Shown: in pieces, positions 36,297 to 45,800 of the stretch
How the letters are laid out: each line of letters begins with the position of its first letter
Numbering within the stretch: position 1 is the stretch's first letter
From: Zygnema circumcarinatum SAG 698-1b
Lineage: Eukaryota > Plantae > Zygnematophyceae
Assembly: GCA_037447605.1 (NCBI GenBank)
Contig: CM074814.1
Span: 682,001 to 746,000 of the forward strand
DNA: 64,000 nt
Direction of reading: 5' to 3'
Notes under the pieces: model-generated
Told to the model about the DNA's origin: nothing
Databases searched by the model: none
Seen by the model: only the letters and a program-made list of their open reading frames with translations
Program-made: the position numbers and the translations under genes

Positions 36297-37127
36297 TCTT
36301 TAAGTTGCTCCTAGTCGAACATACTGTCCGGGGTCCCTTAAATCGCTACGGTGATACTTTGAGAGCTACTCTTCTTTTTTTAAGCTCTTCCTGAAGACCC
36401 TAACGTGGTCCCTGCATCCTTTTTCTGATTTCTATTGGCTGCAGGGTGCCCATTGCGCGGCTTGCTGCCGCACAGGCAGCCGTGAAGGCTGCCGCCGTTA
36501 GACTAAGGCAAACGCCGGATTTGACTACGTCCGGGGGACGTGTCCAGGCCGCAAATGCCTAAGTCCTGGGGGGTCTATCCCTTGGCGCCAGGGTCGGTGT
36601 TGGGTCGGGACACGTCAAGGAAGTGGAGTCATCAGTTCACTGCTGCCCTTCAGACCACATTCTGAAAGAGTGTAAATTTAGCAGAAATTACTACTCACTA
36701 TCAGATACAATCGAACAGTGTAAATAGATTAGAAATCAAAAGGCTTTCTTATTTTTACCTATTGAGTATCTACTGCGTATTGTATAGCGTTACTGTAGAC
36801 CAAATACAGTAACTCAGTCACAAAGGAGAGATGCACATGTACTGTACACTGCTGAATGATGGTAAGATTTCTTCAATCAAAATTCTTGCAATATTGTCTA
36901 TGCGACCACGCTGAGTTCTGAGGCTGACCAGTTCGTCGACATTCATTTATTCATTCTTTCACTCCTGCGGAGTGGAACTTCGTCTCTGTCGACCTGTTTG
37001 GGCTTTGGAACGAGCCGTTACGGAACTTGGGCGGGGCTCGTAAGCTTCTTGGACTACTGTAGAGTGTCGTAGGCCGTTAATCCGCGAGTTACCAGCCGTT
37101 AGATTAGGGCGTTGGATAAGAGACTCA
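36297..37127 (+). repeat. Inverted duplicate of the PPDK 3' end (148 bp of last intron, terminal exon 36445-36562, downstream DNA)
   Basis: Reverse complement of 42230-43070. Encodes (R)[38 protein letters not shown] behind an intact ...TTGGCTGCAG acceptor. Confidence 0.95.
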
Positions 37128-37343
37128 TTGCAAAAGCAAGGGGCGTGGCCGTTTACTGCTTTACTTCAGTCCTTTTGACTATAAGGCCTTTGAGATGGAC
37201 TGTTAGTCGCCAGGTTCAGGCTTATGCTCTTGGTTATTCAGTCACCTCCCGCGGGAGATGGACCAGTGATGAACCGCCACGTGGCAGAACGTGGTTGAGA
37301 GTTTAGGCCGCTACGGGCACCCATCAGCGCGCTAGTACATGTG

Positions 37344-37933
37344 GGACATGATACGGCATGAGATGGTGTGGGCGGCCCATGGCATGGGCATGCGATGTGG
37401 GGCGAGAGGGCTATGTGCGTGACGTGGGCCAAATGGTCAATATGTATGGAATTGGAATTGGCCAATGTTGTGCATTGGCATGAGTCTGAACGGCAACGAT
37501 TGGACGTGACATGCATAGCCAATATGAATCAGTTGCAAATGACCTACAGGTGAAAGGAAGGTCACGAGTCGATTCGTTTCGTGCACTTGCAGATCTACAC
37601 ATTCACAAGGAGCCATATCTCACCTATGAATGAACAGCATTTTCACCTTACAATATAAGAATATTCTGAAACCTCCCAACCCTCGCCAAGGGCCCAACGC
37701 ATGCCCCAACTTTGGAAGGCGGGCCACCTCCAGTGTAGAAGGCCTCGACATATAAAGAATTTACCACCATGTCTGTGCCTCGCCCAGGCCGTGAAACCAC
37801 GAGACGGACCGCCTCTGGGTCGGCCAATAGAATGCCGTGACTGCGGTAGGCGCACACCGGAGACGAGTGACATTCAGGGACCCGCGTTCAAGGCACGACT
37901 TTGTGCGCGTATCCGCCAGGGGTGTGTCCCTTT
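37344..37933. repeat. Direct repeat DR1 (~590 bp)
   Basis: Aligns with 40783-41372, roughly 85% identical by eye. Confidence 0.93.
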
Positions 37934-42032: not shown

Positions 42033-42804
42033 ACTAATAAATGTTTACACAAAAAAAGGACAGAACATGTTCATATTTGCGATGTCGCATTGAACACGCG
42101 CAAGAGTACAACGACCTACGGCCTACGACGAAGACGGTACGCCCCAACCCAACGGCAAATGACCCTTTTAGGCCAACGGCTGGTGAGACGCTGATTGAAC
42201 GGCTGAGAACACCCTAATCTAACGGCTGGTGAGTCTCTAATCCAACGGCATATGACGCCCTAATCTAACGGCTGGTAACTCGCGAATTAACGGCCTACGA
42301 CACCCTACGACCTCCAAGAAGCTTGCGAGCCCCACCCTAGTTCCGTAATGGCTCGTTCCAAAGCCTTAACAGGTCGACAGAGACAAAGTTCCATTCTGCA
42401 AAAGAAGTGAAAGAATGAATGGATGAATGTCGACCAACTGGTCAGCCTCAGAACTCAGCGTGGTCACATAGACAATATTCCAAGAATTTTGAGTAAAGAA
42501 ATCTTACCATCGTTTAGCAGTGTACAATATATGTGCAACTCTCCTTTGTGACTGAGTTTGCTGTATTTGGTCGACAGTAACGCTATACAATATGCAGTAA
42601 ATATTCAATTGGTAAAAATAAGAAAGCCTAATTTAATTTCAACCTATTTACACTGTTCGATCGTATCTGTAAGTAGTAATTTCTGCTAAATTTACACTCT
42701 TTCAGAATGTGGTCTGAAGGGCAGCAGTGAACTGATGACTCCACTTCCTTGACGTGTCCCGACCCAACACCGACCCTGGCGCCAAGGGATAGACCCCCCA
42801 GGAC

Positions 42805-45800
42805 TTAGGCATTTGCGGCCTGGACACGTCCCCCGGACGTAGTCAAATCCGGCGTTTGCCTTAGTCTAACGGCGGCAGCCTTCACGGCTGCCTGTGCGGC
42901 AGCAAGCCGCGCAATGGGCACCCTGCAGCCAATAGAAATCAGAAAAAGGATGCAGGGACTACGTTAGGGTCTTCAGGAAGAGCTTAAAAAAAGAAGAGTA
43001 GTTCTCAAAATATCACCCTAGCGATTTAAGGGACCCGGGGCAGTGGGTTCGATCAAGAGCAGCTTAAAGACATTCACTTATCCGACTTTCAACTTCTGTC
43101 TGACTGCAGGTCTGGTTTTCTCTCTTCAATGGCGAATTTTTTTTCAATATTCTTCTCAATCGTAGTCAGTGCTTGTCAGATTTTTAGGGTCCGCTTCATT
43201 CCCGCTCTCTCCTAGGACACTTCTCCCTCCACTCAAACGCAGTTAACAAACGATTGCATATGGATAGAAGGAAAACAAACCTATGTCATTAGAGGGCTGC
43301 TGAATGCTCACCTAAATGGCGAGCATGAAACATAGTCAAGTCCCGCCTTCGACAAGAACTCCACTGAGGAGGGCTCACCCCCATGCTCTCCACACACTCC
43401 CACCTAAAAAGAAAAAGACAAACGGAAGATAGAGATTCAAGAGGAGGTCCAGCTCACTCGCACTACCCCCACAACTAACCAGCCATACTACCACATGGGG
43501 AGGGCCCCGAGATTCGCGATTGTAGCCCTTCCTGATGTATAGTTAGCCTTAAACTACAGAAATCAGAGAACAATGGACAACAACTATCTTTCCTAAAAGG
43601 GGAACAAATGATACCTTGAGGGAGGGCCGAGTTCTACGCCCACGCTCCGTGGCTATTTGGATCAGCTGCCCTACGCCCTTCTGGTCCAAAACCTGTGCAT
43701 AAAAATGCCATGAGTAAGGACTTGGTTTCTTTAGAAACGAACAGAAGTAGTCTGTCTTTATTCAGTTTAGACTAGCGATGGAAGTGCTTGTGCTGTAAGC
43801 ACACTGAAGAGCGTAATTCTGGAAGAGTGAGAGGACGGAAAGGGAGCCTACCTGGAATGGGTCATTTTGGAGAATTTGGAGAGATAAGTAATGCGGAATA
43901 AACTTTGCAGCGTCATCGCGGCTATATCCGAAGGTCATTTGCGTCAAGTCATTGGTTCCAAACGAAAAGAACTCGGCATGTTTTGCAATCTACAAAAGCA
44001 AAATAGTTTCGCAGTAGTCAATAGATTCATCCTTTTTCGTTTCGTCTATGCTGTTTCAAAATGCCTCTGCCTTCACAAGCTAGCAACGATTCTGCTTCCC
44101 CTGACCCACTATGATAAATGCAAAAATATGCAATGGCCTCAGAGAGAGTCTCTACCTCGTCGGCTATAAGGGCTGCTCTCGGAACCTCGATCATGGTCCC
44201 AACTTTATATGGAACACAGGTTTCTTGTTCCTGGAAGACCATCTCCGCTGTGCGGCGGATTACGCCAACTTGATGGCCAAGTTCCTGAGAAGGAGTGGCA
44301 GGAAGGAAAGGGAGAGAGACTCATCAAAGGAGGAGGTAGCACGAGGGGAAGGGCAGACGCCAAAGGACGAGTCAAGGAAGAAGTGGGCATCCCTTTGACC
44401 TGTGTGAAGGGCTATGATGAATCAACGAAAGGAAACATGAAAGGAACTATCTAAGTTTTCTTACTGGCAAGAGGCCGAGAATGCGTGCTAATGTGCAAAG
44501 GCGAGGGAATATGGTGATCTAATAGTAGCTATTCAAAGCTCCTACTCTAATCTGGGCTGAATCACCATGAGAAAAAAACATCTCTAAAGAGATTCTGGGC
44601 AGCTATTTTAAGCAATCTATGAGGAAAGACACGCACCTCTGGGGTTCCGACTAGGGGCACCATGATTTCTGGTCGAACCACCACACCTTCGCGAGCTGCA
44701 GCAATGGCTGCCTCAAAAATGGCCCGAGCCTGCATTTCAGAGAGCTCCGGATAGGCAATGCCTAATCTGCACATATATCCCAGCAAAAAGGAAGAATAGC
44801 CAAAGCTAAGTAAAGCGTTTGCCTACTTCAAAGAAAGACTCGACCTAGAAAGGAGCGGTTTTCATACAAGTAGAGAAGCAGCAGGAATAAAACTTTGATA
44901 CTCTCACATAAGGCAAACACCAAATGAAAGGGAGTTCCTTAAGAATACTCATGTGTTTGTGCATGAGATGAATACCGGCATCCACGAAATCCTAGCATTG
45001 GGTTGACCTCCGAGAGCTGCTCCATCCTGCTCAGAACTTGGTCCTCTGTCATGCCCGTCTGCTTCGCCAGTTCTTCTACCATAGCGCCAACCTCTCCCTC
45101 AGGGAGAAACTCGTGGAGAGGAGGGTCAAGCAGTCGGATGGTGACAGGAAAACCTGCATTCCGATGAAGGGAGGTCAGAGACAGTGTGACTCCTGCAGAA
45201 AAATAAAGAGTTAAATCCTTTTCATTATTATGGAAGTCGGCGTTTTCGCTTATGCTCCTGAGGTCTACGAAGGTTCCCTCTCACAGTGGTAAGGGCGGAT
45301 CATCAAAAACAGCGTATGTGCGGTTTGAGTTTTTTTTGTGATCTCTCCACGTATGTCATTGATAGCTGTATGGATATACAAGGAGCCGTAGACCTCGTTA
45401 TGGATACTTATCTCCTAGCTACGAGGTTGACAACACAAAGAGCGAAACCAATGTTGCAACCTGAATGATGTCCTTTGAAAAAAGAAAATGGGTTTAGGCC
45501 AACTGGTTAAGTGATGTTACCATCCATAGCCCGAAAGATCCCCTCAAAGTCCGCCCGTTGGTATGGCAAGAGCAGGTCGAGGGCCGCGCGCCGCTGCGCT
45601 GTATTTGTGGCCATAATCATTTGGCGAACTGCGCGAATGCGCTCATCGGATGCAAAGAACTGCAAACGAAGGTGAAACATTTCGCTTCAGTCAGCACTGT
45701 GCCGCAGGGGAGGGGGAGAGACAGAGACAGAGAAAGAGAAAGAGAAAGTTTTTGTCTTTGGTTCAAAAAACCATTTCCTCACTTTCACTTAACTGCCTGT

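Follow-up and report, generated by a model that had tools for sequence, protein, structure and literature searches.

The 3' ends of two convergent genes, TIC236 on the plus strand and PPDK on the minus strand, lie within a 64,000-nucleotide stretch of the Zygnema circumcarinatum SAG 698-1b genome (contig CM074814.1, positions 682,001 to 746,000), which was analysed as a whole and is referred to here as the window. The region between them contains an inverted duplication: the end of PPDK is found in its own place and again, reversed, behind TIC236. The two copies, or arms, occupy 36297-37127 and 42230-43070, the first corresponding to the reverse complement of the second. They are separated by a spacer of about 5.1 kb, and the whole unit measures 6.8 kb. 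A repeat search recovered the pair as four colinear inverted blocks (36297-37112 against 42255-43070), and BLAST aligned 36297-37112 with 43070-42255 at 92.7% identity over 822 columns (E = 0). Across a 10-bp indel the homology of the arms extends to 37127 and 42230. Past these positions, the 300 nt that follow on either side, when aligned locally, scored no better than shuffled controls, and the ends given for the repeat in an earlier, sequence-only reading of this DNA are therefore exact. When the 64-kb window is compared with itself, the pair 36297-37127/42230-43070 is the sole large inverted duplication.

The duplicated end of PPDK and its surroundings

Besides the inverted repeat and its coordinates, which the BLAST, repeat-search and local-alignment results bear out, the sequence-only reading had described the right arm as the true 3' end of PPDK. 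It had placed the same sequence behind both convergent genes, each time in the sense orientation of that gene, and had located within the spacer two direct repeats (DR1 and DR2), a gene for a secreted protein and a miniature inverted-repeat transposable element (MITE). These descriptions hold, the spacer gene lying on the minus strand and its product beginning with what resembles a signal peptide. The features of the locus are as follows.

35744-35878, plus strand: penultimate coding exon of TIC236, ending ...RLFFEY (tblastn with full-length TIC236 homologues, 66-77%)
36133-36150, plus strand: proposed last TIC236 mini-exon, five codons and the stop 36148-36150 (from the length of the homologue C-terminus; splice inferred)
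36277-36296, plus strand: flank of the outer junction, about 2.5 copies of the 7-mer CCCTTAA directly ahead of the left arm (read directly)
36297-37127, plus strand: left arm, the apparently derived inverted copy of the PPDK 3' end, in the sense direction for TIC236
36408-36695, plus strand: 288-bp block identical to 42959-42672, a gene-conversion tract
37128-37340, no strand assigned: u1, a unique 213-bp stretch between the left arm and DR1, with no match elsewhere in the window
37341-37941, plus strand: DR1, a direct repeat of 40781-41380 (588 columns at 90.1%)
38835-40377, minus strand: GC-rich gene for a two-domain proline-rod protein, about three exons (open reading frames; signal-peptide-like N-terminus by inspection only)
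40781-41380, plus strand: DR2, its right end 1-2 bp from the MITE
41382-42032, no strand assigned: MITE-like element whose arms, about 120 bp long, match at 83%; ends of 11 nt (GGAGAATGATA), target-site duplication not evident
42151-42310, plus strand: 23-bp tandem array (AACGGC plus 17 nt) with seven in-phase motifs (42151-42294), the inner breakpoint 42230 lying inside it
42230-43070, minus strand: right arm, the native PPDK 3' end, joined without a break to the PPDK gene and to the tandem array
42805-42922, minus strand: PPDK terminal exon, encoding the 13 final conserved residues and an extension of 25 residues, then the stop 42807-42805
43312-43400, minus strand: 3' end of the PPDK penultimate exon (Pfam and 1vbg_A matches)

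The gene models of both TIC236 and PPDK were searched exon by exon rather than as joined proteins. The penultimate exon of PPDK (43400-43312) matches positions 251-278 of the 293 in Pfam PEP-utilizers_C and residues 834-862 of the 876 in maize PPDK (1vbg_A). The latter match leaves over 14 residues, and these are supplied by a split Arg codon together with exon 42922-42805. The outer breakpoint of the repeat, at 43070, falls within the last intron of the gene (43311-42923). The right arm is thus made up of 148 nt of this intron, the terminal exon and 575 nt of downstream sequence, and the left arm of 148 nt of intron, a copy of the terminal exon at 36445-36562 (stop 36560-36562) and about 565 nt of downstream DNA. 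A PDB search with the 38 residues of the last exon gave no match, the conserved part being too short. The 25-residue C-terminal extension (42805-42882) reaches past the ends of the solved plant and bacterial PPDK chains. Further into the gene, at 45890-47700, very long (GA)n/(CT)n runs and low-complexity runs of proline/serine/leucine type, with a strong GC skew, lie in and around a PPDK intron.

On the other side of the locus, a TIC236 exon upstream of 35744-35878 matches the TamB domain. A search of 1.8 billion representative proteins with exon 35220-35501 found full-length TIC236 in Spirogloea, Mesotaenium, liverworts, ferns and seed plants. Those full-length proteins that were checked (P0004, P0009, P0010, P0011 and P0012) all terminate exactly 50 residues past the exon that ends at 35501. 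In the window, the same length is reached by 45 residues up to 35878, a GT donor at 35879, an acceptor at 36131-36132 and five further codons. Since the homologue C-termini sit at exactly this distance from the preceding exon, the likeliest TIC236 stop is 36148-36150, which would place the start of the PPDK copy 146 nt downstream. The distance of 74 bp given previously relied on a stop at 36221-36223; this would yield 75 residues after the exon ending at 35501, a gene model that the homologue C-termini do not support.

Several other observations concern the end of TIC236. Its last five codons are set apart from ...RLFFEY by an apparent intron of 254 bp (35879-36132). In a fragment from a close relative (P0003, with 88% identity in the neighbouring exon), ...RLFFEYSAADQN runs on uninterrupted, which could mean that the intron is young or that the C-terminus was remodelled. 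The introns that flank exon 35220-35501 carry complementary microsatellites, (TCCC)n upstream (35042-35194) and (GGGA)n downstream (35506-35573), with stretches of 64 nt that are 91% complementary and could pair in the pre-mRNA, looping out the exon. Folding of the TIC236 3' region gave an uninformative z of -1.0. A metagenome scan with the C-terminal exon found 18 loci, all from distant relatives, at 68-75% identity, none of which has PPDK or the DNA of this region downstream. Loci L005 and L015-L018 among them include 2.6-9 kb of downstream DNA without PPDK, and the convergent TIC236-PPDK pair is not seen there.

Within the spacer, the minus-strand gene at 38835-40377 differs from its surroundings in composition, with a GC content of 57-60% against about 48% in the arms. 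No Pfam family was found for it, and it is a near-orphan: 5.8 billion proteins yielded a single weak relative, at 27% identity (E = 1e-6). DR1 and DR2 were also considered as long terminal repeats. This reading was rejected: TG...CA ends and a flanking duplication are both missing, and a scan of three gene-sized frames in the spacer revealed no gag/pol domain.

Breakpoints, age and gene conversion

The inner breakpoint of the duplication offers a means of telling the original from the copy. Position 42230 falls inside the tandem array, and on the right side only does the array continue leftward past this position unbroken; the left arm holds only about 3.5 array units, after which unrelated DNA begins. 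The units of the array differ from one another by 18-32%, which argues that the array is older than the duplication. Because the breakpoint lies in an older array that is unbroken on the right alone, the right junction is best regarded as native and the left arm as a derived copy, both of whose junctions would be new. Each end of the left arm abuts unrelated DNA, and what lies between is a copy of sequence present elsewhere, as is seen in a templated insertion. The homology of the direct repeats stops at 37941 and 41380, and the MITE begins at 41382. Two of the copy boundaries therefore sit at DNA able to form secondary structure or to slip, namely the tandem array and the edge of the MITE. 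The CCCTTAA copies at 36277-36296 are located exactly at the outer junction, where they may be junction filler or merely a small repeat.

Divergence is spread unevenly along the arms. The outer flank shows 12 differences in 111 positions (10.8%) and the inner flank 42 in 412 (10.2%), in addition to indels; altogether, 54 substitutions and several indels separate the arms outside a central block. That block (36408-36695, identical to 42959-42672) has no difference in 288 positions, for which P is about 5e-16 at the flanking rate. It begins 37 nt before the end of the intron, takes in the 3' splice site and all of the terminal coding sequence, and runs on for 133 nt past the stop. DR1 and DR2 differ at 59 of 584 positions (10.1%), a value close to those of the two flanks of the arms. 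Judged by these three figures (10.8%, 10.2% and 10.1%), the inverted and the direct duplication are of one age within error.

The identical block is a tract of recent gene conversion between the arms. Selection cannot account for the identity, because the block covers the 25-residue tail and untranslated downstream sequence, which are non-conserved parts of PPDK. Conversion mediated by cDNA was also considered and was rejected, since the block includes 37 nt of intron (P about 0.02 for zero differences at 10% divergence). A random tract of 288 bp would cover the whole of the terminal exon with P about 0.08; this is not significant and has been given no weight.

Origin of the inverted duplication

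Given breakpoints in the tandem array and at the edge of the MITE, and inverted and direct repeats of equal age, the locus most likely carries an old scar of DNA-break repair, in which sequence was copied and pasted locally through templated filler or template switching. It would then be neither a transposon nor a purpose-built device. This is slightly more probable than not, on a reconstruction of repair mechanism and patch drawn from one genome sequence. In this model, a break about 146 nt behind the TIC236 stop would have been repaired by synthesis that copied nearby sequence and switched templates. Repair would have placed at 36297-37127 a backwards copy of 42230-43070, containing the end of the intron, the terminal exon and the downstream DNA of PPDK. 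In a fuller version, a patch of 1,645 bp (36297-37941) would have been inserted at once, consisting of the inverted PPDK piece, the 213-bp u1 and DR1. Copying would have halted in the tandem array and at the edge of the hairpin-forming MITE. Later, after divergence of about 10%, gene conversion would have made the central 288 bp of the arms identical again. The patch could be the 831-bp inverted piece alone; a single patch of 1,645 bp is the more economical. In plants, break repair is documented to use filler DNA taken from other parts of the genome (PMC8395108).

A number of points weigh against this account. The ancestral arrangement is deduced from one sequence only. The 213 bp of u1 match nothing else in the window, which leaves the single-patch version unproven, and two separate events a short time apart would also account for the equal divergence of the inverted and direct repeats. 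At 0.8-1.6 kb, the patch far exceeds the typical length of templated insertions. At the outer junction, microhomology with the flank of the source (43071-43075) amounts to at most 1-3 nt and is blurred by the divergence of about 10%. Finally, a hAT-like motif at 37060/42307, with its AACGG-type subterminal repeats, makes a transposase-induced break a minor possibility.

One rival account is a micro-inversion through staggered breaks, whereby a segment of about 5.1 kb was inverted and one of its breaks, staggered by about 830 bp at the PPDK 3' end, was filled in. An event with only one staggered break predicts the order A - B' - spacer - B - C, and inverted duplicates of unique sequence are indeed present at both ends of the segment, with a size and identity within the range known from Drosophila, where 17 of 29 fixed inversions carry such duplications, of 46 bp to 1.9 kb and about 88% identical (Ranz et al. 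2007, PMC1885836). The junction 42229|42230 would, however, have to be new, yet the in-phase 23-bp array crosses it unbroken, and the array, with units 18-32% apart, appears to predate the duplication. Nor would an inversion explain why the direct repeats are of the same age, and an event of this kind is considered unlikely. An artefact of assembly, with only one arm existing in the genome, is scarcely credible. Chimeric long reads can create inverted duplications, and nothing more specific speaks for it; artefactual fold-backs are near-identical throughout, and these arms are set apart by 54 substitutions and several indels and join different unique flanks.

Transposition had been advanced in the sequence-only reading, which saw in the arms gene-derived terminal inverted repeats (TIRs) of a composite, Pack-MULE-like unit or the product of alternative transposition. 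In its present form, this explanation would invoke either a hAT-like non-autonomous element ending at 37060 and 42307 that underwent aberrant or alternative transposition, or a 6.8-kb composite bounded by gene-derived TIRs. The ends of hAT-like elements follow the pattern YARNG, and a 22-nt motif beginning TAGRG occurs in the window only at 37060 (plus strand) and 42307 (minus strand), with none expected by chance. AACGGC motifs cluster in inverted orientation beside both sites, and five mismatches between the arms cluster immediately outside the 22-nt motif. The left motif may nevertheless simply belong to the copied 831 bp, as the homology runs colinearly through it. The 8-10 bp to the left of 36297 and to the right of 43070 are unrelated, so that no target-site duplication surrounds the large unit, and no 8-bp duplication was seen around the inner candidate (37060-42307) either. 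No transposase domain was detected in the three spacer frames scanned, and no further copy of the unit exists within the 64-kb window. The unit could not move as a whole, because its right arm carries the last 13 conserved codons of PPDK, an essential gene. The transposon claims are not supported in the form in which they were made, and an origin by transposition is regarded as very unlikely.

Possible consequences and relation to known systems

Whatever its origin, the PPDK copy is placed where it could affect the expression of TIC236. In the 1,050 nt scanned beyond the TIC236 stop, A+T content reaches 65% over only one stretch, 36660-36880, and this belongs to the copy. The copied exon reads in the same direction as TIC236, and its frame agrees, modulo 3, with that of the ...RLFFEY exon. 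The copy would offer TIC236 a splice acceptor, an open frame and an AT-rich 3' end, and TIC236 transcripts may terminate there. TGTAA was considered as a poly(A) signal, its plus-strand copies after the TIC236 stop lying only at 36671 and 36719, inside the copy. The argument was dropped, because TGTAA is known in this role from chlorophytes and not from streptophyte algae and because its spacing is inconsistent in the other genes of the window.

It is conceivable, if rather doubtful, that the copy became fixed as a ready-made terminator after its insertion had displaced TIC236's own, with a 3' untranslated region (UTR) and poly(A) site shared by the two genes, both for chloroplast proteins, and maintained by occasional conversion, and with a spacer able to flip. 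As the conversion tract shows that the arms recombine, inversion of the spacer is possible. Another proposal is that the arrangement is a selected module: a TIC236 terminator or 3' UTR shared with PPDK, an alternative last exon, an invertible switch, or a source of hairpin RNA that regulates PPDK. The identical block does reach from the 3' splice site through the coding sequence into the beginning of the AT-rich 3' end region, and the sense orientation and frame of the copied exon, with no other AT-rich stretch within 1,050 nt, fit such a role. Identity over a poorly conserved tail and untranslated sequence is, however, the mark of recent conversion and is silent on function, and coverage of the whole exon by a random tract has the P of about 0.08 given above. 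Since the shared piece would have the same sense in TIC236 and PPDK transcripts, the two would not base-pair; a hairpin RNA could form only if transcription ran on through 6.8 kb, spacer gene included. No Rfam match passed the threshold, and most of the weaker ones fell in repeat-rich sequence. Selection for such a module is considered improbable.

Elsewhere in the window, two intronless paralogues lie in tandem (8065-9108 and 11384-12430). They share 80.8% identity over about 1,060 bp and are separated by a 42-bp minisatellite (9564-10365). The sole outside relative found for them is 42% identical.

The duplication behind TIC236 is an ordinary kind of rearrangement, well resolved. Its value is as a clean natural case, one sequence being enough to recognise the breakpoints, the shared age of an inverted and a direct repeat, and the conversion tract that came later. 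The locus also frames a simple question: can a duplicated gene end be taken over as the terminator of the gene that faces it?

Among known systems, templated filler and template switching of the FoSTeS/MMBIR type (fork stalling and template switching/microhomology-mediated break-induced replication) provide the nearest likeness. The insert copies sequence a few kb away, with one piece inverted and one direct, the breakpoints are at structure-prone DNA (the tandem array and the MITE edge), and the hallmarks of a transposon are missing. The present case differs in the size of its patch (0.8-1.6 kb), in its unclear microhomology (at most 1-3 nt), and in being ancient and overprinted by gene conversion. 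Arm-to-arm conversion in inverted repeats and palindromes likewise produces a block of perfect identity between diverged flanks in an old inverted duplication; here, only about one third of the arm has been homogenised, which points to occasional rather than continuous conversion.

The staggered-break inversions of Drosophila share with this locus a non-repetitive gene piece duplicated in inverted orientation at both ends of a segment, but here the supposed new junction is inside a continuous array and the spacer is just 5.1 kb. In Pack-MULEs and other gene-fragment-carrying TIR transposons, long inverted ends enclose a host gene as they do here, whereas at this locus no target-site duplication, family TIRs or other copies were seen and one of the 'TIRs' is a working part of PPDK. 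Lastly, inverted duplications that give rise to hairpin RNA—the microRNA-origin model, Mu killer and PAI1-PAI4—also consist of an inverted partial copy of an expressed gene near its parent. The arms described here are 5.1 kb apart with a gene between them, and the copy lies in the sense direction for the nearest transcribing gene.

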